From: Paragordius varius
Lineage: Eukaryota; Animalia; Nematomorpha
DNA: 64,000 bases
Direction: 5' to 3'
NCBI GenBank assembly: GCA_964247055.1
Contig: OZ176054.1
Location: 2,542,001-2,606,000, forward strand
Position numbers and translations under genes: made by a program. Below the pieces are notes generated by a model, which saw nothing but the letters and a program-made list of their open reading frames with translations, was not told the DNA's origin and made no database searches. Numbering within the stretch: the stretch's first letter is position 1; each line of letters begins with the position of its first letter. Positions 32,081 through 51,940 of the stretch are shown piece by piece.

Positions 32081-34429
32081 ATGGGCGTGAGAGGCTTATC
32101 AACATTTTTAAGAGAATTTTCCGAAGCTTATAATAATTCGTATAAATTATTTAATTGTACTGTTATTATCGATGGATGGAATTTAATTCATTACCTTTAC
32201 AAAAATATTATGCCCAAAAATCTGATATTTTGTGGTGATTATGTATCTTTTGCTGTGATTGTTATTAGATTTTTTTATATATTGTTTAAAAATAAGATAA
32301 TACCACTATTGATATTTGATGGTTGTTCAGATCCCGATGGTCTAAAATCTGAAACAATTATGAAGCGCCATGCAGAATTAAACGCTAAATGCCAAAATCT
32401 AGTTCCTGCAAATTTACCATATATTTGTGAATTTCTTTTTTTAAATATAATGAAAAGTTTGGACATTCCATTTTATCAATCAATATTTGAGGCAGACAAT
32501 GAAATAGCAAGTTTATCTAATCAATTAAAAGCTCCAGTTATCAGTAATGATAGTGACTTTTTTATATTTCCCTTAATGCATGGATTAATTCCTCTTTCGA
32601 GTTTGAATATTGATCAATATTTATATATTCCATATACAATTGATACCGATATTTTATCTATCCCTAAAAAATGTCAATTAACTTGTTCCATCTACCTACA
32701 AACTAGGTTATTTAATGAATATCCCGGTTTACATCCAAAAACATTGGCTGTGTTTGCGCTTGTAAATGGTAATGATATATCTCACAAATATGATTATTCC
32801 TCTTTTGTTAAAATGTTAGAATCTCGAAAATCTTGTACCCGGCACTCAAATAGCGGTCACAAAATATCGGGTTATCTCAAATGGTTTAGTCGATTTCCAT
32901 CCTCGAATGATTGTATAGGTGCAATAGTCGATTCACTTAAAAAAGAGGATAGGGAATCAGCTAAATATCAATTGGATACCTTAATTACCAGTTATGACGT
33001 TCAGGAGATACCAACTGAAAGAGTGCACAACATCCAATCAAAAATTAAGAGTTTTACCAACGCCATGAAAAATCAAAACTTTTTGACCACAAAACTAAAC
33101 GGTTTATGTGAATTATTACGACAATTCCCATCCAATGAATTCATTGAAATTCCACATAGCTTGCCGAGTAAAGAAGAAAAAAATGGTTTACAACCATTAT
33201 CATTCGTAATGCAAAATGAGCAATTTGCTCAACGTGTCTTACAAAATATTGCAACTATTTTAAACATAGAACCATACTGCCTTCCCTCTGACTCCATATT
33301 AAAAGATTTTCCAAATTTCGCGACAACCCTAAATGATTATCAGGCTAAAATTGAATGTATGGACTTTAATTACATTCTGTGTCATTTGTTGATCAAACGA
33401 AAAATTTACCTTTCAATACAAATCGAAAATTTCCGTTTACCCAGTGTACATGATGTATCAGCACCTCTAAGACGCTTAATATATGCTAAACTGTATGAAC
33501 CCATATTCTACGCTCTTGGTATAGATTTCAAAAATCTTAACAGATGTAATAACAGTACATTAACTTTACCAAACTTAATTAATTTGGATATCACGGAAAT
33601 AAAACGTAAAGATAAAAATTTAGTTCAATCTATCATACCCATTACCATAACTGAAGAAGATCTAAATAGTTATAATCATATGAATGCATTGACCCCTTTG
33701 ACATTTAGTCAATTAGTCTTGCCTGAAACGTATGAAAAAATACGATTTTTCCCGGAATCCCTTAAAGTTTTTTGTTTAAGTACCATATATTTTATTCAAG
33801 CTAAAAATACGAATCATAAAACCAATATGGATTACATGGATAAGTTAACTTTCTCATTAGCTATGACTATAACACTCTTAACATTTCCCCTTCTTATTAA
33901 TACTTTTTATGGCATTAAACGAAGCAATGATGAATGTACTACCATAGAAGATTTTCGTGATTTTGCACTTTCCTTCAATAAATACAAGGAAAAAATGTCA
34001 AAACCGCTGAAATTTTTTCCCAATGATTCCACTTACAACACGTATGCAAACATGAGGAGTGGCGTTAATTTGGACATTATTCATTTGTTTGGGGAATGGC
34101 AGAGCTGTTTCCTAGCCATACTGCTGTTAAACCAAGTGTGTGATGGCCCCTTATACACAACCGACTTAATCCTAAGTATCCTGACAACTTTGAATGGCTC
34201 ACTAATGCATAATGTATGTCAACATATATGTAATGAAATCTCTGCTTGTTCTTTGTCTAACAGTTCAAGTTGTCCCCAAATTAATATGGCGCGCAAAATG
34301 GTTGACAAATTTTTTGCCTACATCAATAAACATAAAATTTTTGGGCAAAATATACGACTGCCCGCTACGAGTATCTCGCCAAATATTACAGATTTATTTC
34401 ATATGTGTATCAAAAATTTAATTTTGTAA
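32081..34429 (+). CDS. ASTE1: Asteroid homolog 1 (XPG/PIN-family nuclease), single exon, 782 aa
   Basis: Starts MGVRGLSTF. PIN/XPG acidic motifs IIDG, IFDG, FEADNEIA and VISNDSDFFIF are present, and the C-terminal LDIIHLFGEWQSC...LNQV is typical of Asteroid proteins. Confidence 0.9.
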   Translation: MGVRGLSTFLREFSEAYNNSYKLFNCTVIIDGWNLIHYLYKNIMPKNLIFCGDYVSFAVIVIRFFYILFKNKIIPLLIFDGCSDPDGLKSETIMKRHAELNAKCQNLVPANLPYICEFLFLNIMKSLDIPFYQSIFEADNEIASLSNQLKAPVISNDSDFFIFPLMHGLIPLSSLNIDQYLYIPYTIDTDILSIPKKCQLTCSIYLQTRLFNEYPGLHPKTLAVFALVNGNDISHKYDYSSFVKMLESRKSCTRHSNSGHKISGYLKWFSRFPSSNDCIGAIVDSLKKEDRESAKYQLDTLITSYDVQEIPTERVHNIQSKIKSFTNAMKNQNFLTTKLNGLCELLRQFPSNEFIEIPHSLPSKEEKNGLQPLSFVMQNEQFAQRVLQNIATILNIEPYCLPSDSILKDFPNFATTLNDYQAKIECMDFNYILCHLLIKRKIYLSIQIENFRLPSVHDVSAPLRRLIYAKLYEPIFYALGIDFKNLNRCNNSTLTLPNLINLDITEIKRKDKNLVQSIIPITITEEDLNSYNHMNALTPLTFSQLVLPETYEKIRFFPESLKVFCLSTIYFIQAKNTNHKTNMDYMDKLTFSLAMTITLLTFPLLINTFYGIKRSNDECTTIEDFRDFALSFNKYKEKMSKPLKFFPNDSTYNTYANMRSGVNLDIIHLFGEWQSCFLAILLLNQVCDGPLYTTDLILSILTTLNGSLMHNVCQHICNEISACSLSNSSSCPQINMARKMVDKFFAYINKHKIFGQNIRLPATSISPNITDLFHMCIKNLIL

Positions 34430-35044: not shown

Positions 35045-38000
35045 TTAATAATTGGGTATATTAGTTGTTGATGATGATATAGCATCTTTCAATAAAATTG
35101 CGTCCTCATCGATTAACACCATTTCATTCGGTTCATAATGTTCTGCGCTCTTCTTATCAACATTAGATTGTTCATTAGTTGTTAATAAGGTATCAATAAT
35201 GTTTTGAACAAAAACAGTATTTGGGGGAGATCCAGCCAAATATTGTTGAGAGGCGGCTAATATATTTATTATTATAAGATACATTGGAATTAAAATATTA
35301 TTTATGGCTTAACAGATATTAAAATAATGATTTGATAACAAAATTAAAACCTGTCCCAAAACTTCGTATGCTATTGTTTCCATGGCAATCGGAATCATGT
35401 ACATCAAAATTTGATCCCAAAGATTCATGTTTAAGGTTACCAATACTTCCACCTTGATAAAATATTAATTGTTAATGTATATAACTGAAAAGCATATTAT
35501 ACCATTTGTACTTCTAGAATGTCCTTGACTACTTCAAGAATCTCCTTGAACACTTCAAGGTCCTTGATCATTTCAAGTTAGTACTAAAACTATTCAAGTT
35601 TATTTTTTTAACTTTTATCAATCGAATCGTATATCATTCATATGTTTTATTGTTTTTAACCTATTTTCTATTATTTAACATGGATTTTTAATCCTTATCA
35701 ACTTTTAATCAATCAGAAACCGTATATCCTTATTAATTAAATATTATTTTGTATATTTATAAGATTTTAACACGTAATCAAAAAATATAAAAGTTTTCTG
35801 GGTTTATCAACAATTTTTCATTGAAAACCTTAATTAATATTTTTTGGAAAAAAATTAGTTTGAGTGGTTTTTAAAAATATTTTTTTTTAAATGAATAAAA
35901 TATATAATAAATAGAGAAAATTATGTTAAAAAATATGCAAAAATTATGGTTAAATTAAAACGTAAAAAATTTAAAGACTTGAAACCAGGACTAACTTGAA
36001 GTGTTCAAGGACATTGAAGTGTAACTGGTATAACATACTGATTAAATAAGTTAAAATGATATATTTTTTGAATTGCAGAAGACCACAGTTTTTCAGCCAT
36101 TTGGGCTTTTATTCATTATCGAATTCCATTTTAACACTAAATCTAAAATAAAAACTGTCATCTAACTTAAGTATTTTTTTGCTTTAATATAGGTAAATAA
36201 TTTTAAGATTACAAATCAATATATGAATATCCTATAATTAATATCAGGTGTAACCATAAGTTATTACCGGTTGATTATAAAGACGTTAGCAAGTACGCAG
36301 ACGATTGATTTGTTACATCAATATTGTTCATCTATAATTAAACTACAAATCCAGAATTTAAGTCCGCCAAAAACTAGCGCCTTATAATAATTCAGTAAAG
36401 ACATTTGCGGCACATTCTGCCTTCTGATGAAATAGACCGTTGAAAGTTATCAGATGCTGGCGAAAACATATGGTGAACATGCTCTATCGATAGTTTGGCG
36501 CTCTGGTTCACCCCACAAATTAGCTGTCAAGACGCTTAAGTGCAAGAATTATTGAGTGTTGACCTAACTCAAACTTAACAATTGGCAGACGCATTACAAA
36601 TATCAAACAATAAATGAGGTCTACAAGCAATGAGAAAATCAAACTTGAATGGGTCCCACACATTTTGAGGGACGCTAAATCTGAAAATCCTAAAGTAACT
36701 TGTGAAATCCTCCTTGAACCACACGAAAAGAAATCATTTTTGCATCAAATAGGGACAAGATGATCGCTATCACTAATAAACTATCCAAACTTCTTCTCAA
36801 GATTATACTGAAAAGAATCTCATCCTCGCTGGACTATGAAATATCTGAGGTGCAGGCTGGCTTTAGAGCAAAGAGAAACACTACCAATCACATAGTTAAT
36901 CTTAATACAATAATTCAAAGATACAATGAATTTGGGAAAAGTCTATATTGCTGCTTTTTAGACTTCAGTATGGCATTTGATACAGTCAACCACGACTGCC
37001 TATGGAACATATTACGATCCTCCGGAGTTTCCCCGCACATAATACTCCTGCTTCAATCGCTGTATTCTAGACAAACAGCTGCGATTAAAACCCAATTCGG
37101 TCCCACTGACTGGTTTCCTATTCTCAGAGGTGTGAGTCAAGAATGTGTCCTTTCTCCCCTCCTATTTAACTTATACACAGAAACATTAATACGCAATTGT
37201 AACTTTCCACAACATATTGGGGCACGGATCGGTGGTCTTACTATTTGCAATCTCCGGTACGCCGACGACACCATTCTCTTGTCAGAATCCCACACGGACA
37301 TGACCTATCTTTTAAATAATCTCACCATCGAAGCAAGTTTGATGGGTCTTAAGCTGAACCAGGCTAAATCTAAAATAATGATCCTAAACGCTCCACAACT
37401 ACCATTTACAATCAATAACTCCCCCATCGAACTAACCGATCACTGTAAATATCTAGGCTCCATAATTACATCCGACGGTAGCTCGGATCCCGACATACGA
37501 GCACGACTAGCATTGGGACGTGCTACTATGGGTAAACTGTCCAAAATTTGGAACTCGTCGGTCATAAGACTTCCAACCAAACTTGCCATCCCGAAGGCGA
37601 TGATATACCCCGTGGCAATTTATGGGTCCGAATCATGGATATGCAAATCCATTGACAAAGCCAGCATAAACTCTTTTCAAATGTGGTGCTTTCGAAAAAT
37701 ATTGAGAATCTCCTGGAAAGCCCACATCTCCAATTCTTACATACTCAAATTCATTAAACCCGAATTTTTACTTTACGATTTAATAACCTTTAAACAGCTA
37801 AAATATCTGGGTCATATCCTGCGATCCGACTCATTAGAAAAAAGCATACTCTTTGGGTTGGTAGATGGCACCCGCAGAAGGGGCCGACCCAAAAAGCGGT
37901 GGATCGACATGCTTAAATCAATAGCAAATCTAACCTTTCCTCAATTGTTGAGAGAATCACAGGACCGCCTAAAATGGAGAACACTAATCTATGAGAAAGC

Positions 38001-41000
38001 CAAGAGTCAGTATATGACTAGCTTATAACAACAACAGGGTCAAGAAGGAGTTTTATTTGTAAATAAAAAATAGGTTTTACCTTGCCAAGCCGGACCATCA
38101 ACACCAATGCCAAATCGCTTCGGCAGAAGACCGTGTTCTGTGTCACGTGAGACAGATTGTTATATATTATGAATCCTTGACACCCCGTTAAACCGTTAAT
38201 GACCGGAATTGCCCAAAAGACCTTGCACAATGATTGTGCTACATGACACTACCTATCTCACATAGCAAAACCAGTGAAAGACACCCTGAAATCGCTTCGA
38301 TAGGAATATCTTTCGCAACTGAACTCTCCTCACCTTACGCCATCTATCTTTGATCAATGGCGGTAAGGCAAAGCTGTGCTTAATAATTTGGACGATGTTG
38401 AAAATGGCTCTTCTGGCACGGTTCATATATTTTCTGAGAGATCGGCGAAATGTGTACGATATATTTCAATAATAAATAATTTTCTTTTAAAATTACATGT
38501 TTTTTACCGAAACCGGTAAAAACTTATGGATACACCTGGTTTTGGACATTATAAGTGCAAAAGAATACAAATATTTTGCTATTGCTAAAACGGCCCTTAT
38601 AGTATATTTGTTTCTGCAATCTCTTATTTTATTGGGTATAAACTCCTTACAACTATAAAATATGTTTAATAAAGATTGAAGTGTCACTGTTACCAAAATA
38701 ATCCAAATCACTATTCGAGGTAAATGATCCATTTTGTTTTTGTCTCGATTCATGGATAGATTCCAACAACATTTCGGTTAACTTTGACCCGTTTTCTCTT
38801 TTTTCTATAAACGATTATAAAATCTGAACTATAAAATTCTAATCTTGAAAATTGGTTAAAATATCTTAAACTAATCACACATATTTGTAATAAAGCTAAA
38901 GATTTTCATGTGTTTATGAGAATTGTAATATATTTTTTATATAATTTGGTTCTACCTTCAATCATATGGGAAAATGGTTGATGATTAAACCCTTTACTTA
39001 TTCCACCATTTTCGATATAGTTATTGTTAAAATCCGTACCAACATTTTTATTGTTATTGATCAAATTTAAGTGTTCGTTAGAAGCAAGTAACAACATTTC
39101 CAGCTCTAAATCCGTTATACTTCCGTCTGTACAATGCCTTAATTTATTGGTATTATTATTATTATTATAATTGCTGACAAGAGGAAAACCAATATTAGTG
39201 GATGAACAAGCAGAAAATGAGGAGTTACATCGACTCCTAGGTAATGATTTTGTATGAATATTGCGTTGATTCAAAGCTATGCTAAAATCAATGTTTTTCG
39301 AGCGAAAATTTGACATTTGTAAATTATTAGCGTTAGGTTTTTCGGACATTTCTGCTACATTATCCCAGGCCGATGATGGGATAGGGCAAAGGGCCCCGCT
39401 TAATAAACTTACATTCTTGTTTGATGAGTTAATATCTAGATTAAAACTACAACCATAATTATTGTTCGCTGTAGAAATAGAGTAAATTGATGATTTGCTA
39501 TGTTGTGTAAGTGATGAGATCAAAGTTAAATTATTCTTATCGATGCTGCTTCTATCATTTTTCGTCATATCGGGTAAATTAGCATGGCCAAGCCCATTAT
39601 TATCTAAATTCTAAAAAATAAACCAGGAAATATAAGTTTTGTACGCAAAACCTGAAAAAAGTATAAGTTATATAAAATATTTTAATTCTTGCAACTAAAA
39701 CTTTACTTTATTCTTTAATATGAACTGGGCTTTATATCCCAAAAATGGAAACTTTAACCGTTATTTCATTTAATTCACCTACGTTCATCTGGTAAAAACG
39801 CACTACCAATCAATGAATGATATGTTAATTTTGAATATTTACCAATGTAGCTTCTCCATTAATAAAACCACTATCATTATTATTTGTCGCATAAATGTGT
39901 TCACCACACCCTTCAAAAAATGATTCCCCATCTCCTTCGATCAATGACTTTAACCTCAAATCATTTACGTTTTGACACAATGAGCTATTTCTCGATCGGG
40001 TTCCAGTTATAACGGACGCCAATGATTTTTGGCTAAAAGTGTAGAATAAGTTATATTATATGTTTTAGAATTTGAAAAATCTCAAAAAAAACAACATTTT
40101 TTCCAATTTTCAAAATTATTTAATTATATGGCAATGTAAATACTTGAAATTATTATCATGATGAGCTCTTGATTTATTATCTAAACTAGCAGGTGAATTC
40201 AAATTATCCCCACCATGATGTTGATGCGATATGGATTGTTGTTGATTAGATATAATTTGATTAGGGTACAATGGAAAATGATGTACTAGCTTATTCTCCC
40301 CTACATTAAGGGAGCGATGCTGATTCATTTGATTTTGTAGCAATAAAGCCTATAGTTAGGAGATATATGTTTCATAGAAAAAAGATAGACTATTATATTT
40401 TTTTAACTTCTATTTTAAAATCGTTACTAATATTACTTGTTGAAAATATGCTTGTAGATAAGGCATTTCATGATGTCCGTTAACATTTCCCCCATGGCCA
40501 ATGCCAAAATGAAAGGGGAGTTGGTGTGGAGGTAAAGATGCTTCAATATTTGGCTTATTTAATATCGTGTGGTGATCTAAATAATAGGTTAAGTAAGGAT
40601 CATATGTTTAATTTTCAACATTCAATTACATTTGACTTTATTGCTAAATTCTATCCATCACAGACATATTCCTTGTTATTTAAAAACACTCTAAATGTCT
40701 TGTTATAAACTTGGAGACAATAAGTAACGCGCCATAGAATTTGTACAAAAAAGTTGACTATAAGATTGATGCATGAGGCGTCAAACAAAAGATGTGATAT
40801 TTTTACACTGCCTTAAATTGTTGTGCCGATATGTCCGTAAATTAATAATTAAGCCGAACATTCTTAAAATTGTTTATTATTCAAGTTCCGTTTTGTAAAG
40901 AAAATATAATAAACAAATTATCAATTTTCAAAAATTTTATAGATAAAAACGCCTATAAAATTTTATATTTAATATTTATTCACAACTGAGGAATGCATAT

Positions 41001-43482
41001 TGTGATCAACCAAATTTTTTGGAGTATACAAAAATACTTAAACATAATTTATTGAGGCCAAATAATTGAAAAATAATCAAACAATAATTACCATGAAATG
41101 GTGAATAGTTAACATGGCTATGATTAGAATCACCTAAATTTGAGCCCCCACCTGATTCCGCAAGTCCAGTATCCTAAAATTGAGGAATATTAATTTATGT
41201 AATTCAGAATTAAACAAATTATTATTATTGCAAAAGTTTTGTAAATTGTATATTACATTAATTGTTTTTATGGGAGTTACGGAATGATCAGTATCATCCA
41301 AATATTCCAAATTCGACAAAATAACACTACTTGTATTTCTGTCTTTCGTTGATTCTATGAAAAAAAAATCAGAACAATATAGATAAGAGGGTGTAATGAA
41401 AATCTGAAATAAATTTAGGATAACAAGACAAATGCTGAAAATCAACCTTCAAAATTTTTTAGGTATGGTTGGATGATATGACTGATTATAAGAGTATTCA
41501 TAATGACCGTGACATCGCCAATAAGTTTTAAACTTTCGATAGATGATAAATAAATTTTAAAATAATGGTAATTGAATTTTAGGTAAGAACAATAAAATTT
41601 GAACTAATCTCAATTTTTTATTTAATTGTCATATATTGAATGTGTAAAAGTTAAAAATATAGCTAATCATTAAGTTTGTCTTTTTGATAATAAACGTGAA
41701 TCACTGCTAGTGGTCAGCCGATTTTTAACTTTTGTGTGTTAATAGTCGAAAATCGATCAATCGCTATTTTTAGCGCAAAAAATTAATAAAAATATATACA
41801 TACTACCTTCATAATTTTCATGAGTTTCTAATTTTGATTCGCTTATGGCATTATTACTATGTATTTGTCTAAGTGGTGCAAAATTATGGAAAGATTTATA
41901 ATTCGTATTATGGTGTTGCATGGCATAAGCTGCCGCTATCGCCGAATAATATGATAACATGTATTGCGAATAATTTTGAAAGTGAATTGGAACTTGTTGT
42001 TGGCCATTAGCCTGATAAGTATGTAATTTATTTTCAAAAACGTGGTTAGGTTTAACATTAGCCATATCTTCAACACAATTGTTATTATGGGGTAAGAAAA
42101 AAGTTGGGTTTGTCATTGAATGATTCATTTGAGTATAATGGTATGATGATCCGTAATATGGGTTAAAAACACTAAAATTATTATGATTGATAAGGTTATG
42201 CGAATTTGCGTGCTTCAGAATTTGTGGATAATGTTGATTCTGTAAAAGGGCGTATGGCTAAGTAAAATAAAAATTGGCTTAGAAAATATTTGAATTGATC
42301 AAAAACCTATTAGCGCCAGTCACTCTCGATTTTAAAGGCATATAAAATCAGTCCATCCAATTGAACTAAGCTTTTTTATGTAGGTACCAAATATAATACC
42401 ATATAAATTCAATTATGGCTCTAGGTATTTTGTTTATTTTAAAACTTCCGGAAAGCAAAGATCTATCAAATTTATAATGTGCAATTAATTATACTCGACG
42501 ATGAACCAGATTAGCTTATATATTAATAATAATCGCGAAAACTCAAAATTTTTTATAATTAGACAATTTTTTATAGATATAATATTTAATCTAACAATTA
42601 AAAATGTGTCTATGAACAATTTTCTGGAAAAGGACTCACATTATTTCCACCATAATTATAACCGTTTATGATAGCGGCCTTGTTTGACTTTTTAATTACC
42701 TAGATTCAATTAAACCTAAGTAGAAATGAAGTTCGATAAAAATAAACTATAGTTTGATCACGATTTTATGGAATTTTCTCGGAGTATTATATATACCTTA
42801 TTAATTTACCATCAGTTAGTCGCAGATAACAAGTTTTTAAGCGACGCCTACATGGTTTAATTATAATAATATATACAAATGATGGTAGACCATTTGCACT
42901 TCAAGAGTGTCCTTGAACATTTTAAGATAGTCCCTTGAACACTTCAAGTTGGTCCTTGAACACTTTAAATTGGTCCTTGAACGTTTCAAGTTGGTCCTTT
43001 GATTTTTTTGCTTTATTTTTACCTTTTATCAAAATCGTATATCATTCATCTATTTTATCGTTTTTAATCTGTTTTTTATTATTTAACATTAATTTTAAAT
43101 CAATATCAACTATTAATATATCTTTATAAATTTTTTAAATTAATTTTGGATATTTATAAGATTTTAACAGGTAATTAAATATATTTATAATTTTTCATTA
43201 TAAACATCAGAAAGCCAATAATTTTGTTAAATTGGAAAAAAATTAATTTGAAACAAAAAAGTGTTTTTAAATAATATATAATAAATAAAGAAAATTAGGT
43301 TAAAAAATAATTAAATAAAAAAATACTCGGGAAAATTATGATTTAATCAAAATTAAAAATTTTAAGGACCTACTTGAGGTGTTAAAGGACTAACTTGAAG
43401 TGCAAGGACCAACTTGAAATCAGGGACACTATTGAAGTGAACATAAAAAGCAAACCATAGAATGAATTATGCAAAAGTCATA

Positions 43483-43519
<37 letters not shown>

Positions 43520-46500
43520 GCCATTTTCAAAAATAAATAATCATTCTTTTCACATCTCGATAAAATATTAACTTGTATTGCCCCATTAATTTTATGTAAT
43601 AAAAACCCAAACGTCCGTTAAAAATAATAGTCGTCTGCCTTTCTTTTAATTACAGTTTTTGATTAAGGCAACAATAAACAATAATATTCATTAAAAATAA
43701 TTACCTGTGAAGATAAACCAGGTATATCTTGAAGATGTAATGGTGTATTTATCAAACTAAAATTTTGGGGATGATGTGCTAAACGAAAAAGTATATAAGA
43801 TATTTAAAATTTAGATAATATGACCAATATAAATTTTACGTTACTTTAATTAATGAAATGAAAAAACAAAGAATTTAGGAGAGACAAACAATATAAACAT
43901 TTTACTGTTGTTAACACCCGCCAACCCTATCCCCGGTAAAGCCGACGGGTTTGTAGGAAAAAACGAAAGATGCGCTGGTCCCATCACATTTGTATTCAGT
44001 GGATGATGATGATTATTAGAATCGTTTTGGCCAGGATTTATGTGATTGACCATATTGTAAGAGTGAGGAGTTAAACCATAAGAGCTAACGATTGTGGAAA
44101 TGGTAGGGAAAGATGATGGTAAATTATCGAGAAAGCTGTTGAAATTATAGGGATTGTCGCTATTCGTTGTCCAACTGTAATTGGTTGAAGAAATGTTTGT
44201 TGATGATCCAATATGTGTCGACGCTTTCCAGGTATCTGTAAATGTTTTGAATGCTCCGGCCATTTTACTTGAAGAGGGCAATGGGGATTGGGAAATCACA
44301 TGTTGAGAATAAGTATTATTAATTATTGGCACATTAGTTGTGTGTATAAGCGCTTTTCCAGACCCGAGCAAAGTATTACCATGATTTTGATTTACATGGT
44401 AATATGGAGGAAAATTATTTTGATGATGGTGAAATGGAAATGAAGGGTGACCGCTACCATAATAACCGAATGGAAAAGGTATACCTTTAGAACTACTATG
44501 TTGAGGCAGGGGGTAACGAGAAGCAATAAAAAATGGATTATGTGGTAAGAGATTATTTAAGGGTGTGGAGTTTGCCTTTGGCCCAAGATGAGCAGAAGCT
44601 GTAGGATAATGCTGAAAATTATTTCGATTGCTGTTAGGATTATTAATATTATCATTGCTAGTATGGTTATTGTGTTCCCAGGGTTGAGCATTAGCATAAC
44701 TTATGCGGATAGAAGTGTTTTTCAAAATGAGATCTTCCCCAATCAACTTTTGTGCCACGTCAGGGTCGGCAAAAGTTACAAAAGCAAATCCTCTACACGG
44801 TTTAGGTATAAACACTTCAAGGACCCGACCGTACTGGGAGAAAAAGGTTAAAATATCATCTGACGTTATATCGTCCGTCACTCGGCCTACATGTATTTTC
44901 CCATTGCCGTGCGGTAGGGAAATTACCTGCAAAATAAAGGCAAAGTTATACTGTTCATTGTATAATGATACCCGTATAAAAGAGTAAAAATGTAACCATC
45001 ATATATTTACAAAATTTTTTTATAAATATAATATCTAATGATTTCATGCAGGCAAATTTTACATTGTTATAGAATAAAAAAATTTTCAATTTAATATTAA
45101 TATGTTTACTATCTGAGATCATAATGTAGGATTATGAAATATATTGAGGATATAAATTAGTCTCTAAAATAATTTTATATTACAACATAAATATTTATAT
45201 TGCTTATGGATATAGCATTAATTAATGAATTAGTTTTAGATTAAAAACGGACCGATAAATTTAAATATTCTCACAGTTCATATTCATTCACACGTACATT
45301 TAAATAGCGAAGAAAATGGATAAAAAATAGTTTTGCTTGAACAAAAATATTTATTTGAAACATACAACATAATCTATATAAATATAACACAAAACATATC
45401 ACATAACATATCGCATCTCGTATCATATCACATATCAAAAATTAGCAAAAAATAAGAAATATACAAAAGTTTGACAATTGCTCTATCAATGTTGTCATAT
45501 TCAATATGGTAGAGCGGTATTGTTATGAAATTTAAGTCTCTTAATAATATTATTCATATTGGGACTCAGTACTTTGGAATAGGGGATACGGACTTCACAC
45601 ATCCTTCCATCAATATTATGTTTTTGGGCCATGCAGAGAGTTTGAGCGTTTGAGTCAGAAAATCGAATAAATCCAAATCCTTTGGATTTACCAAAGGCAT
45701 CACGTTTGACCTAAAAACGAACGAATGACTAAAAAAACCAAAAGTAAGTAAAAGAGCTATTAATCATCAAAATAATTGCGTAATATATTTTGTCACTTAT
45801 AATTAAATTGAAAGTTAAAAACAAATTAGATCTAATATAAAGACGATCGTGAATACTCTTAAAAATATATGTTTAAAAGATAAAAGTAAAAATTTTGGCC
45901 ATGGCGTGACGTTATTATTATTTGCAAATTGACTAAACTGCGGAAATTATGCAAGCTAATCCATGGTTTATTACCACATTATACCATGAGATTATTTTAT
46001 CCATGTTTCATTAAACAATTGTGTATTTAGACAGGTGTTAAAAAACGCAAATATTAAATCGCCTATAAAACCAATAAATTTAAAGGTTAAAAATTGGTTA
46101 TATATTATCAAAAAATCAGCCTAACTAATGGGGATATTATCCGTTGTTTTTTTAAATAATATAAAATTAACAACGTTAAGACAAAATGTAAAACTATACA
46201 AAACTTCCATGTTTTAAAAATAGATGCGCCGCATCAAGATAATGTTAATCTTTAAAAATGCAATATTAAAACAAATTGTGTCATCTAACCTGGACAAAAA
46301 CTAAACTACCAAAAGTAGCAAAGTAGTCTCTAAGCGAATTTTCATCGGTTGCCCATGGCAACCCCAATACAATGAGATCACAACATTTTTTGGCTTCATC
46401 CGTTTTTTCTGTTAGAGAAGTTTTCTCAATTTTTTTATCTATAGTAATAACGAATATTTTATTTAGAGACATAGTAAGTATATTTAATTTAGAAATAATA

Positions 46501-46881
46501 AGTTAATAAAAAATAGCGGGTCACCTAAACAGAGTTATGTTGGGGCTGACAATTTTTGAAATAAAATGTAATCTTCAAACTTATATAATTTCGATTAACC
46601 AATTAATAGTTTTTATGGTTGAAGAATTTTTTACCTGATTTGGGAAAAACAGCCCAATATATACGATCACCCCAGGCATTTGTGTCAGGTGGATAAAGCT
46701 TTCCATCTTCCAATCTTATACCTCTCCAAGCACCGGATTTATCATTTTTATAGCGTAATCCAGTAATTCCTGGATATTGAGCAGCAAGTGTAGATAATAA
46801 AAGGGCCCCGTCTTTTTCAACAGGTAATTCCATAAAATCATCTTCACTATTATCAGTTACACGAATAAATTCGTCTTCCAT
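35045..46881 (-). CDS. TARDBP: TDP-43 orthologue (NTD, RRM1, RRM2) with a very long Asn/His/Ser-rich C-terminal region; up to 15 exons
   Basis: Core exons 46881-46635 (NTD: FIRVT...[27 protein letters not shown]), 46438-46290 (DLIVLGLPW), 45710-45573 (SKGFGFIRF) and 44926-43906 (RRM2: [20 protein letters not shown]). Tail exons 43778-43705, 42239-41804, 41354-41281, 41173-41092, 40576-40437, 40349-40144, 40032-39843, 39610-38956, 38804-38694 (or read-through to stop 38653), 35452-35351 and 35256-35045 are all GT-AG and in phase. The core is certain; the tail is inferred from phase consistency. Confidence 0.88.
35502..36028. mobile_element. TA-flanked MITE with subterminal repeats of about 22 bp
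   Basis: TA|CCATTTGTACTTC at the left end and GAAGTGTAACTGG|TA at the right end, with GTCCTTGAACACTTCAAG-type subterminal repeats. Homologous to 42890-43439. Confidence 0.75.
36244..38539 (+). mobile_element. Internally deleted mariner (Mos1-like) with both TIRs, interrupted by an RTE LINE
   Basis: Left TIR TA|TCAGGTGTAACCATAAGTTATTACCGGTT and right TIR AACCGGTAAAAACTTATGGATACACCTGG. Transposase remnants [13 protein letters not shown] and KKSFLHQIG lie before the insertion; PNRFGR lies after it. Confidence 0.9.
36761..38035 (+). mobile_element. 5'-truncated RTE-clade (BovB-like) non-LTR retrotransposon; reverse-transcriptase ORF 36760-38028 (422 aa)
   Basis: RT motifs [31 protein letters not shown] and KYLGSII, plus the RTE/BovB-like tail YGSESW...[14 protein letters not shown]. 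The element ends in a (CAA)n tail and is flanked by a 10-bp TSD, AGGGACAAGA (36751-36760) and AGGGTCAAGA (38036-38045). Confidence 0.93.
42890..43439. mobile_element. MITE in TDP-43 intron 5, same family as 35502-36028
   Basis: CCATTTGCACTTCAAGAGTGTCCTTGA at the left end and CAGGGACACTATTGAAGTG at the right end, with tandem GTCCTTGAACACTTCAAGTTG repeats and a shared internal aatcgtatatcattcat block. Confidence 0.78.
43488..43515. repeat. (TA)n microsatellite
   Basis: Pure TA run. Confidence 0.85.
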
Positions 46882-47040
46882 AAAACAAGCAATCAAGTAA
46901 GCAAAATATTATATAAGAAGACACACACAACACAAACAACTTTTGCAAACACACGTTTTAAAAATTTATTTTCGAGTGAGTCTCCAAAATGTGCAACTGA
47001 TGTTTTCGTGTTGATAAAATTAAACACCTCGTGGTTTAAA
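46882..47040. promoter_or_regulatory. Probable bidirectional promoter and 5' UTRs shared by TDP-43 and CWC21
   Basis: Only 159 bp separate the divergent ATGs at 46881 (-) and 47041 (+). Confidence 0.7.
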
Positions 47041-50000
47041 ATGTACAATGGTATCGGACTCCCCACCGCTAGAGGTAGCGGTACAAATGGATTTGTTCAA
47101 AGAAATCTTTCCTACATTAAAAATGTCAAAGAACGATTAGATTACAAGTTAATTTTTGGTTTTTAAATTTTAGACCTATAAGCCGAGAAGATTTGGATAA
47201 AGCTTTGCTGAAAAAGCCAAACGATGAATTACTCCTACATGATCATAAAAGAAAGTTGGAAATAAAGTGTTTAGAAATGAAAATATTGATGGAGGATCAA
47301 GGGTAAATTTTATATTTTGCGATTTTTAATCCGAGATATTGTGATATAAATAAATTTTTTAGATTCGATGAAAATGAAATTGAAGAAAAAGTTTCTTTGT
47401 TTCGCAAAATGTTGATGAGCAGTTTAGAAAGCGTTGGAAAAAGCGGTGTTTACATTAGCAAAGATGATATTGAAGAAGACGCTCTTGGAAGACCTATGTA
47501 TTCACAATTTTTGTATAATTACAGTCATGTCTATATAGAATTGTCAGAAATTCGTATTTAAATGATTATATTTTTTTTTAATTGTTTTGATGTTTGTTAT
47601 GTCAACTTTCAACATGCGCATTTTTAAACCTTAAAATAATAATAGCCTATTTATTGTAAGAATTTTTAATTTATAAATTAAAAGATGTTGCAAAATATTA
47701 TTCTTGAACGTTTTATCTACAACATGCGCATGTAATTTATGATAACCATTGATATTTGTTTTCATTTTCTAGGGGTTTTTAACATGCACTTAAAATATAA
47801 AATAAACCCAAGCAGATGTCCATTTAATCTCTATATATATATATAAAAAAATAAATCATACTAGAGTTATTTTAAAAAATTATGAATATCAACGATAACC
47901 CATTATTTCTTCTTTGCTCGGCAGCTAGTGTACTTGAAGGTTTATATTAAAAAATAAAAAAGAACGAAATCTAAGGAAAACATAGCTCCCTCAGTTTATA
48001 CTAAGTTCATAGTTTGCGATAATGCACCTATTCACAAAGCCGCGGTGGTAGGTGAGCTAAGGAATAAAATTGTTTATTTACCTCCATATTCGCCACAACT
48101 GAATCCCATTGAATGTTTTTTTCATGAGATTAAACATCAATATGATAAAAAACCACGGTGTAGTACCCCTCAGGAGCAGCATAACAAAATTGCAAGACTT
48201 TGCTAAGAGAGAAGGGAAAAAAATCTAAAAAATTATTATAATTTTTCTTCACATATTTTGTTGGAATGTATACAAAGAAAACCCCTATAAAATGAAAACA
48301 ATTATAAATTTATTTAAAAATTATAATTATCAATAAATATTTTTATCTTTCAAATTATACTTAGGTTATGTGTGTTTAAACTTTGAGTTAATAAAATTTT
48401 ATAATTAATATTTTACAAAAGATAAAAATTACAATATGCGCATGTTGTGCATCAAGAATAATATTTTGCAATATCTTTTAATTTATAAATTAAAAATTCT
48501 TACAAATAGGCTATTATTATTTTAAGGCTTAAAAATGCACATGTTGAAAGTTGACATATCAAACATCAAAACAATTAAAAAAAAATATAATCATTTAAAT
48601 ACGAATTTCTGACAATTCTATATAGACATGACTGTAAATAACGTTCATGCATGATTTCTATAATAATATAACTTTTTTAATAGAATGAGTAGATATGAGA
48701 TATTTGACCAATAAATAGGCATTTTAAGTTAACTGATTTTATTTGCAATTAATTAATTTACATATAAACCTTGCTAATACATAACAACATAAATTATATC
48801 TTTCCATTAACGTTAAGCCAATAATAATACCTGCCCATTTACTGTATCTACAAATATTCCCGTAATAAAACATTGATTTTTACATCCCCAAAGTTTTATT
48901 ACAAAATGAAAACATATATAATTCCTTTATAAAATGTGAGAATCATTATCTTAGTTTTATTTTTCTTACTATATTTACGTTGCAATCTCCACCAAACACT
49001 GCTAATGCTATGATATAATTTCCATTTAACTTAAATTTTAGCACTAAAAATACGCATCAAATGATGCGTGCCAACGAAAACAAGAATCGTGTCATAGCAG
49101 ACGCTTTTCGCATCAGCAAAACTTACAAACCAGGTGATTCATTCGCTCAAATGAACACAACGGCCGAAAAAGAAAAGCTGTTAAAACTAAAATCATCCGG
49201 GACAGAAACTTCAAATGAACCGGAAAAGGATTATCCAGCTATTCAAAACACAGCTGATGTGAATGTCAATAATCTATTATCCCAATTAGGTAAGGAATTA
49301 GTGTTTTATATCTCTATATATATAACCCCGATTGTGACAAAATACTTGGTACACACATCATGAAGCTTTTTCAAACAAAATATAAAATTTTGATTGTATT
49401 TAATTAATATTAATATATATAATGTCCTATCATTGTTGAAAAAAGTAATTTAACCTACTTAAGAAATCGGAAGCGGTTGATTAGCATAAGGTTATTTGTT
49501 TGTATTAAAAAATCTCATGATTAAAGCAGCTCAACTCTATATATGTTATTTGGGAACGATAGTTTTTACAGATAAATCCAATAATCGAGTAGTAACCATA
49601 AAATGTTTATATAAGCTATCTTTGTTTTAATAAATTAACCATCTGTTAAAATTATATTCTTTAAAAAACCTATCAGAATATTGTTTTAAATGTGTAATTC
49701 TATTTATATTGCTGCTTTTTTCACCCTTATTATATTAAGGTTATATGGTATAAAGGAGGATTCAAGAATATAGTTTTCTTTGTTAAAATGACAGTCTTAA
49801 TTTTTCTATATAAAATTATTTAAGTTTATACTTTTCCCATTTCTTTTAAATTTTTTGTATTATAAACAATATTCAAGTTTTTTCAAACCTTGATTATATT
49901 ATAGAATTTAAATATTTTTTGCAGATGCACCTAGCGACATAGAAGTTACTATTATGCCGGAAGATATAGCCAAGTATGGATTAGATATATAATATATAAT

Positions 50001-51940
50001 TTGTTTTGATTTGTTTTTCAACTATATAATAGATTTATATTTTTTGTTAACCTTGCTGTTATTACAGTTAGTTTAATAAATGATTATTACGAAAATAAAT
50101 GAATATCCAAAAGCAAAAATGATTATCACATGTTGAAATATACTATTTACAATTCAAATTCCTTGAACAATTCAAATTCATCCTAAAAATATATTATGTG
50201 TTTTCGGGCTAATATAACCCATTATTAAGATGAAATGGCTAAGTTTATTATTTTTCAGTATTATTTTAATTACAAACAAAATTTTAATTTTTTAAAAATA
50301 TAGGTAATATTTATCTTAAAAAGCACATAATTTTTTTTAGAGTGAATTTAAATTGTTCGAGGGGGAATTTGTAGTGTAAATGGTATATGTTAATGTAAGG
50401 GTCGTATATGGTGTATTTATTATATATTTTTTTAACCATGTACTAATCATTTTTTTTCTTTTAGATATTCATTTGTTTTTTCGTGATAATCATTCGTTAA
50501 TATTACTATATCTTTTTTGTTATGTGTTTAAATATCTGATATAATATTTCAGTTAAAGGATTACATCACATAGATATATAGATTTAAAATGTCAGCTAGA
50601 TTAGAAATTTGGAATTAAGTCTTATTTTGACTTTAATTTGGATATTTGGTAATTTATATATTATGCAGTTTTGATTTTACATTTCACTCATGTAATGAAT
50701 AATCATATAGGAATTATGTAAAAGTTGTAGGTTTTTGATTGAAATCATAAGACATGGTCGTCCTGGATTACCTGCACATCTAAGAATGAATGAATTGTGT
50801 TTTTATATTTAACAGTGAAATGTTAATTAAAAGGATTAGAGCTTATATTAATTAAAAATGGTTATACGTATTCACATAGTAAACATATTATCTATCCACT
50901 TAACGGATATAAAATTTAAGTTGTAATTTTCAATGCTTAATTTGTTACTTTTGATAAAGGTTAATTATCTCATAGGCTAGTTCCAATTCAATTATTACAT
51001 AAAAATTAATAATATATTTCAAATTTTTAGATATGATAGTTCCGATTCAGAAATGCCATCACTCCCCAAAAAATCTAAAAAGAAACGGGAAAATGACCAA
51101 TTTGAAACTTTACATACTACACATAAATCAAATGATGATAAAATGCCTCATCATGATGAGCAACACCACCATCGTAAAAAGCGCTCCTACGAATCCGTTC
51201 AAAAATCACCCGACGATAAACCCGTTAACGTTAAAAAGAATAAAAAGGAACATAGCCCTAATGATGCATATAGATTATCTCCGAAACAAGATTATCAAAT
51301 GAATAATTCTAAAAAACGTACTTATGAATCAGATCAAAGAACGCAGCCGCCAGAAAAAGATGTTTGTCCTAAAAAGCAGCATAAAAGGAAGCATAGTACC
51401 AAAGGACATCGAGTATCATCAAAAAAAGATTATGAAATGGAGAATTATAAAAAGCAATCATCTTCCGAATCAGTCGAAAAAATCCATGTTAAAAAACATA
51501 AAAAGAAACGCAGCCCAGATCATCGAATATCATCGAAAAAGGACTCTGTTGATGACATTGAGAATTATGAAAAGCGTTTTTACGAATCATCCCAAAAGAT
51601 ACTTGAATTAGCTGTGAGTAAAAAACAACAGAAAAGGGAACTTCCTAGTCCTCACCATCATCATAATCATCGATTATCACCCAAAAAAGATTATAAAATG
51701 GATATGCAGAAAAAGCGTTCTGAAACAGATGTCAATCCTAAAAAACATCATAAACGGGAACACAACAGCTCTTACAACCAAAAAAATGATGGGAATAAAG
51801 AAACTTATAAAACGAAACATTCCACCCAAAAATCGGAACCGACAACCACCAAACCTGTAGAAAAACATAAAAAACGTCGAAAAAGGTCACCATCCTCCCC
51901 CTCATCTACCTCTTCATCAGCTTCGACGTCTGATTATTAA
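47041..51940 (+). CDS. CWC21: CWC21/SRRM2-like splicing factor (cwf21 domain), 6 exons, about 525 aa
   Basis: Exons 47041-47147 ([23 protein letters not shown]), 47174-47302 ([28 protein letters not shown]), 47363-47497, 49042-49289 ([25 protein letters not shown]), 49925-49973 and 51031-51940 total 1578 nt and are in phase. Confidence 0.92.
47522..48634 (+). mobile_element. Internally deleted Tc1/IS630-like transposon with inverted repeats of about 210 bp, in CWC21 intron 3
   Basis: TA|CAGTCATGTCTATATAGAATTGTCAG at the left end and CTGACAATTCTATATAGACATGACTG|TA at the right end. The DDE remnant [10 protein letters not shown]...[16 protein letters not shown] lies at about 48000-48205. Confidence 0.92.

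Follow-up and report, generated by a model that had tools for sequence, protein, structure and literature searches.

We analyzed a 64,000-nucleotide (nt) stretch of DNA from the nematomorph Paragordius varius (NCBI GenBank assembly GCA_964247055.1, contig OZ176054.1, positions 2,542,001 to 2,606,000 of the forward strand), referred to below as the window; all coordinates are positions within it. The window consists of AT-rich animal DNA with about 27–28% guanine plus cytosine (GC), in line with the 26.93% GC of the published assembly of Gordionus montsenyensis (10.1101/2023.06.26.546503). Its minus strand carries an orthologue of TDP-43 (TARDBP/TBPH), followed on the same strand by a series of low-complexity exons. 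At least two of these exons are real coding sequence, and we consider it fairly probable that the series belongs to the TDP-43 gene itself, in which case the protein would carry a low-complexity tail of about 875 to 980 residues.

The TDP-43 gene and the exon chain behind RRM2

By sequence similarity, the locus is securely assigned to the TDP-43/TBPH family. The sequence-only reading of this stretch, made earlier by a model from the letters alone, had described a canonical core of about 260 amino acids (aa), and database matches bear this out: the N-terminal domain and the pair of RNA-recognition motifs (RRM1, RRM2) together span 260 aa. Exon 1 matched the Pfam family TDP-43_N (PF18694) at 2.5e-24, covering profile positions 1–74 of 74, and, in the PDB, the human TDP-43 N-terminal domain (6t4b, 5mdi) at 1.7e-20. 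RRM1 is split between exons 2 and 3, and because each of these exons carries half a domain only, each half falls under the Pfam cut-off; both of its signature motifs, RNP-2 and RNP-1, can nevertheless be read directly in the sequence. The RRM2 encoded by exon 4 is equally distinctive, in that the top PDB matches are all TDP-43 (4bs2, which is human, at 2.1e-26, then 7py2, 1wf0 and 3d2w), while the next family, Hrp1, follows at 3.9e-08.

Past RRM2, the frame of exon 4 stays open for about 276 codons, to an in-frame stop at 43852–43850. To follow the frame beyond this point, we built a chain from stop-free minus-strand segments, pairing the best acceptor at the start of each segment with the best donor ahead of the segment's first stop. 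The resulting chain leaves exon 4 at donor 43906 and proceeds through exons a, b, d, e, f, g, h2, i0 and j (Table 1), with an open frame across every GT-AG junction. The boundary sites at eight consecutive junctions are all phase-compatible, for which the chance expectation is (1/3)^8, or about 1.5e-4. Exons i0 and j, which lie past a 3.2-kb intron bearing a putative retrotransposon, are the least secure part of the chain.

This chain reproduces the phase-matched series of GT-AG exons past RRM2 that the sequence-only reading had described, and both junctions that it singled out, 43906/43778 and 38694/35452, are present in the sequence. Its product lengths of 1,187 and 1,278 aa had to be replaced, as an exon-by-exon check gave 1,134 and 1,242 aa, a discrepancy of 36–53 residues. 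In place of up to 12 tail exons, the models hold 11 or 13 exons in total, 8–10 of which encode the tail. The giant size claimed for the tail would hold if a single transcript exists, the tail then having about 875 to 980 residues.

Table 1. Exons, intron and predicted products of the TDP-43 locus (window coordinates)
Feature	Position	Strand	Description
Exon 1	46635..46881	-	start codon and TDP-43 N-terminal domain; 82 codons plus 1 base; donor CAG|GTAAAA
Exon 2	46290..46438	-	linker and RRM1 first half; RNP-2 LIVLGLPW; Pfam RRM_1 partial, 0.0028; phases checked
Exon 3	45573..45710	-	RRM1 second half; RNP-1 KGFGFIRF; Pfam RRM_1 partial, 0.0011; phases checked
Exon 4	43906..44926	-	RRM2 (~82 aa), then 258 aa of low-complexity tail to donor ACA|GTAAAA
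Intron	43779..43905	-	127 nt, GC 18.9%; retention would add 18 codons to stop 43852–43850 (536-aa short form)
Exon a	43705..43778	-	74 nt, no Met; phase 1 in, phase 0 out; strong donor CAG|GTAATT
Exon b	41807..42239	-	433 nt, low complexity, helix candidate; alternative acceptor 42257; donor AAG|GTAGTA
Exon d	40437..40576	-	140 nt; phases fit b and e; 3/3 listed SNPs synonymous
Exon e	40144..40349	-	206 nt; preceded by an 87-nt intron, 19.5% GC
Exon f	39843..40032	-	190 nt; preceded by a 111-nt intron, 18% GC; charged residues 21%
Exon g	38956..39610	-	655 nt, Asn/Ser-rich; within a 234-codon open segment; predicted disordered
Exon h2	38653..38804	-	terminal (stop 38655–38653) or spliced at donor 38694
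Tentative exon i0	35351..35452	-	phase-compatible, 33 aa
Tentative exon j	35048..35307	-	phase-compatible, then stop 35047–35045; start of j intron-like in composition
Predicted product, 127-nt intron retained	stop 43852–43850		536 aa
Predicted product, read-through past exon b	stop 41759–41757		703 aa
Predicted product, h2 terminal	stop 38655–38653		1,134 aa, 11 exons
Predicted product, through i0 and j	stop 35047–35045		1,242 aa, 13 exons

Coding signatures, composition and a candidate helix

Base composition follows the proposed exon boundaries closely. GC content is 30–41% in the proposed exons versus 18–25% in the introns, with sharp drops at the introns of 127, 87, 111 and 151 nt; exon 4 itself has 38% GC, dropping to 19% at position 43905. 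The lengths of the open segments were compared with a null of 2,000 first-order Markov simulations, in which the 99.9th percentile was 161 codons. Two segments, of 234 codons (containing exon g) and 166 codons (exon b), exceed this value, and the summed open codons exceed the maximum of all 2,000 simulations. The segments of 65–77 codons were not significant when each was compared singly with the same simulations.

Natural variation provided a further line of evidence. The figures that follow refer to the variants listed (40 of 117 variant sites), which come from independent genomic DNA runs. Exons d and g contain 13 listed single-nucleotide polymorphisms (SNPs). Read in the predicted frame, 10 of these are synonymous, whereas the other two frames give 3 and 1, and the excess over the neutral expectation of 0.235 has P = 7e-5; exon g alone contributes 7 synonymous and 3 nonsynonymous changes. 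Every frameshifting insertion or deletion (indel) lies in a predicted intron or past the exon 4 stop. The two indels within exons keep the frame: exon 4 gains GAT at 44001, and h2 loses a net 3 nt at 38787–38790. Both were seen in one DNA run; tail length is polymorphic in the species or sample. Because of the GC contrast, the long open segments, the synonymous excess and the placement of indels, we conclude that the exons downstream, or at any rate d and g, genuinely encode protein and are subject to purifying selection.

One further segment, c (41092–41173, minus strand), was considered for the chain. It is 82 nt long with 41.5% GC and has good splice sites. We rejected it as an exon of the chain: its phase does not fit when it follows b, and of the 5 SNPs listed in it, 4 are nonsynonymous. 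It comes into phase only when it replaces b (a-c-d). Segment c is probably non-coding, with a rare alternative exon as a possible reading.

The sequence encoded after RRM2 is of low complexity throughout. Over 989 residues, it consists of N 15, S 12, L 8, H 7, I 7, P 6, G 5 and Q 5 per cent. The 258 aa that directly follow RRM2 in exon 4 have N16 S13 P10 H8 with 5% charged residues, and the proximal exons as a whole (exon 4 tail, a, b, d and e) have 4–12% charged residues per exon. Aromatic residues reach 11–15% in the exon 4 tail, b and d, and 4% in a and e. The proximal ~540 tail residues, from the exon 4 tail to e, are prion-like, being rich in Asn, His, Ser, Pro and aromatics. Glycine accounts for 5.4% of the whole tail (1–11% in the exons from the exon 4 tail to h2, reaching 15% only in the tentative 33-aa i0), so that the tail is not Gly-rich; glutamine makes up 4.6%. 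A search for internal duplication of tail modules found none, and Pfam recognized no family in any tail piece. In an exhaustive HMMER search of exon 4 against a library of 1.84 billion representatives, the matches were to RRM2 only, and no close relative was found.

Human TDP-43 contains a conserved helix at residues 319–341 that tunes self-association (10.1101/640615; PMC10491227). We looked for a counterpart using a helix core, A-M-[MILV]-A-A-A-Q-A-[AM], defined solely on the tail helix that is conserved among 12 orthologue representatives. When the 66,154 nine-mers without a stop in all six frames of the window were compared with it, the single top match was SAIAAAYAM, encoded by exon b, which agrees at 6 of 9 positions (expected 0.02). 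The triplet Ala-Ala-Ala occurs elsewhere in the six-frame translation at two places, both at one locus near 51,340 on opposite strands. AlphaFold2, run without an alignment, predicted disorder for exon b outside a single long helix at residues 90–108, with a predicted local distance difference test (pLDDT) score of 50–59, the top-scored stretch of the exon; SAIAAAYAM falls inside this helix. Exon g, by comparison, scored below 50 throughout and is predicted to be fully disordered. We regard the motif evidence that ties exon b to the TDP-43 tail helix as moderate, not strong. The predicted exon b helix probably corresponds to the conserved self-association helix of TDP-43; we infer both its homology and its role in self-association.

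These results bear on the remaining claims made from the letters alone. The description of the tail as rich in Asn, His, Ser, Gln and Pro rather than Gly agrees with the composition given above. Of two helix-like strings that had been pointed out, both are present; the first lies in a predicted helix, and the second straddles the d/e junction. The proposal of a hyper-extended TDP-43 tail is supported in part: the identity of the gene is secure, and the coding exons and the helix-like motif in b favor the proposal, with the single transcript remaining its conditional part. The further suggestions, of several helix elements and of a natural experiment in how such a domain stays soluble, have the standing of conjecture. 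An alignment with TARDBP of related species had been suggested as a check; in the matches retrieved here nothing past RRM2 aligns, and the tails of 26 orthologue representatives are 76–289 aa long.

One transcript or several

In the model that we favor, and which we consider fairly probable, TDP-43 is a giant single gene that extends through exon g or h2. The main coding transcript would bypass the in-frame stop at 43852–43850 by using donor 43906, 54 nt upstream, and splicing would continue through a, b, d, e, f, g and h2 to yield a protein of about 1,134 aa, possibly 1,242 aa. Such a protein would join a normal RNA-binding core, made up of the N-terminal oligomerization domain and two RRMs, to a disordered region of ~875–980 residues, with one short hydrophobic Ala/Met helix placed in the proximal tail, ~400 residues past RRM2. 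Retention of the 127-nt intron would instead produce the 536-aa short form.

On indirect grounds, we infer a single mRNA that runs from RRM2 to 38653 or 35045. Coding-type GC and composition stop exactly at donor 43906, and the next 18 codons, up to the stop, are intron-like. Exon a has no Met, and its composition resembles that of the exon 4 tail (log-likelihood ratio of +0.46 per aa). Exon b is open for 43 codons ahead of its first Met, with a composition of the exon 4 tail type. Exon d lacks a usable start, its sole Met lying near the end of the exon. Poly(A) signals and UG repeats were also searched for at the locus and were uninformative.

Several observations weigh against a single giant gene. 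The four sequencing runs that best match the stretch are genomic DNA, with contigs that cover the introns and show no GT-AG joints, and almost none of the stretch's sampled words are present in the RNA-like runs of the species. The 536-aa short model falls within ordinary orthologue size, as judged from a comparison set of 26 full-length TDP-43 representatives in which total lengths do not exceed 550 aa. Under loose site criteria, many donor-acceptor pairs are in phase. Of the four SNPs listed for the exon 4 tail, most are nonsynonymous, and composition shifts at exon f, with 15–27% charged residues from f onward. The helix prediction in exon b, at a pLDDT of 50–59, is of low confidence, and a profile hidden Markov model of the wider helix region, searched against the six-frame translation, scored exon b at a non-significant E = 88. 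Finally, no homologue of any tail piece was found in HMMER searches with exon 4, in word searches with the b and g segments or in the ESM Atlas with g. Because the tail pieces have no homologue, conservation cannot confirm either the exons or their linkage.

The alternative that best withstands these data is one of two genes, which we nonetheless regard as unlikely: a 536-aa TDP-43 that ends at 43852–43850, followed on the same strand by an orphan low-complexity gene running from a or b to h2, with its initiating Met in b (42128) or later. A product of 536 aa would be typical of the 26 representatives, and the locus offers a precedent for close packing in a divergent plus-strand open reading frame (ORF) whose start lies within ~130 nt of the TDP-43 ATG. 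In b (41757–42128) and g (38906–39568) there are ATG-initiated ORFs, and an RNA link between the two parts was not seen in the sequencing runs at the locus, which are genomic DNA. Against a separate downstream gene stand the absence of Met from exon a and the 43 open, tail-like codons that precede the first Met of b. Donor 43906 and acceptor 43778 are moreover in phase, GC and composition become intron-like exactly from 43905, and the window's sole strong match to the tail-helix core sits in exon b.

A tail of intermediate length is improbable in our estimation. TDP-43 would here end after b, at the stop at 41759–41757 (703 aa), with d to h2 forming a separate gene or a minor isoform. The helix motif links the chain to TDP-43 no further than b, the intron between b and d is long at 1,230 nt, composition changes at f, and an AATAAA lies 135 nt past the stop. 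Yet the 16 codons that would be read through after b are strongly intron-like, donor 41807 (AAG|GTAGTA) is in phase with acceptor 40576, and exon d is coding while lacking a usable start. That the chain reflects nothing but chance open frames in non-coding DNA, with phase agreement an artefact of abundant GT/AG choices, is very hard to maintain: although the 65–77-codon segments lie within chance expectation, many phase-compatible pairs appear once site quality is disregarded and a 104-codon open segment at 41448–41137 itself appears non-coding, the 234- and 166-codon segments surpass 99.9% of simulations, the synonymous excess among listed SNPs (P = 7e-5) is confined to the predicted frame, GC steps coincide with splice sites, and the listed indels are in-frame within exons and frameshifting only in introns.

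Relation to known TDP-43 proteins and other features of the locus

Compared with human TDP-43 (TARDBP, 414 aa), the Paragordius protein keeps the order N-terminal domain, RRM1, RRM2 and matches it closely in sequence there, and like it would continue into a disordered, low-complexity C-terminal region, with SAIAAAYAM as the candidate for an embedded short Ala/Met-rich helix. The tails themselves differ. The human tail comprises ~150 Gly-rich residues encoded by one exon, whereas the tail predicted here would comprise ~875–980 residues, rich in Asn, Ser, His and Pro with 5% Gly, and encoded by 8–10 exons. The candidate helix would lie ~400 residues past RRM2 and keeps 6 of 9 core positions, and nothing past RRM2 aligns between the two proteins. 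Drosophila TBPH (531 aa) and other invertebrate orthologues combine a conserved core with a divergent C-terminal region that exceeds the vertebrate one in length (PMC3337594). Taken alone, the exon 4 tail (258–276 aa) falls among the longest tails sampled (242–289 aa), while the tail of the full chain would be ~3 times the longest in the 26 representatives, and no sampled relative has a similar one.

Asn-rich low-complexity expansions are known from the AT-rich genomes of Plasmodium falciparum and Dictyostelium. The present tail resembles them in its setting of ~27% GC, in its wealth of Asn, Ser and other residues with AT-rich codons, and in being an orphan that is polymorphic in length. It differs in consisting of separate exons under purifying selection rather than homopolymer runs within a conserved protein, and in its lack of internal duplication.

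The low-complexity tail and short helix of TDP-43 control phase separation and its aggregation in amyotrophic lateral sclerosis and frontotemporal dementia, and natural variation in the tail has mostly been sampled over a narrow range of sizes. If the giant gene is real, the tail of this orthologue, six times as long as the human one, would reveal the features that are retained in evolution, and would offer a ready-made construct with which to probe length, composition and helix position against solubility. Until a transcript is demonstrated, the case has limited value, and the genome may commonly contain long regions of low complexity. For the annotation of AT-rich genomes, the locus carries a caution, in that a protein can lose half or more of its length where a donor of weak appearance is followed within a few codons by an in-frame stop.

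The last coding exon of human TARDBP contains internal alternative donors that alter the C-terminus. Donor 43906 could act as a splice switch between the 536-aa form and a form of 1,134–1,242 aa, the latter alone bearing the self-association helix, although we put this forward as a tentative and rather doubtful idea. If it were true, splicing would decide whether the protein can assemble through its helix, and the locus would parallel, in a lineage-specific way, the exon 6 alternative splicing and the autoregulation of vertebrate TARDBP. Its low-complexity domain would then exceed in length every other known from a natural TDP-43.

A GU-rich tract, GTGTGTTTG...GTTGTTTGTGTTGTGTGTGTC, lies at 46920–46960 on the minus strand, 40–80 nt upstream of the TDP-43 ATG, and contains the sole (TG)4 run on that strand across the whole window. 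TDP-43 binds UG repeats. The tract could be a putative site for TDP-43 binding to its own 5' leader, or equally part of a shared promoter. The divergent plus-strand ORF mentioned above (about 47008–47166) begins ~130 nt from the TDP-43 start codon, which suggests a very compact bidirectional promoter. Its peptide may resemble the N-terminal motif of Cwc21/SRRM2, but Pfam returned no match at E ≤ 0.01.

Several other elements lie in or near the locus. An intronless 782-aa ORF at 32081–34429 on the plus strand, with an XPG N-terminal nuclease domain (XPG_N, 1e-07), is convergent with TDP-43 and faces the 3' end of that locus; it is perhaps Asteroid-like, and its protein has no exact entry in a public gene-call collection. 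Within the 38694–35452 intron, on the opposite strand from TDP-43, a 422-aa ORF (36760–38028, plus strand) encodes a reverse-transcriptase domain (RVT_1, 1.3e-28) in a stretch that is locally GC-rich at 36–41%, and is likely a non-LTR (long terminal repeat) retrotransposon. The intron between a and b holds two arrays of a 21-nt tandem unit, CACTTCAAGTTGGTCCTTGAA, at 42897–42999 and 43364–43418, in opposite orientation and ~365 nt apart. Word depth in the DNA runs is at least 10^5 in these arrays versus 10^2–10^3 in their flanks, placing the unit among the most repeated sequences of the genome, and the pair looks like a foldback element or one of the MITE (miniature inverted-repeat transposable element) type.

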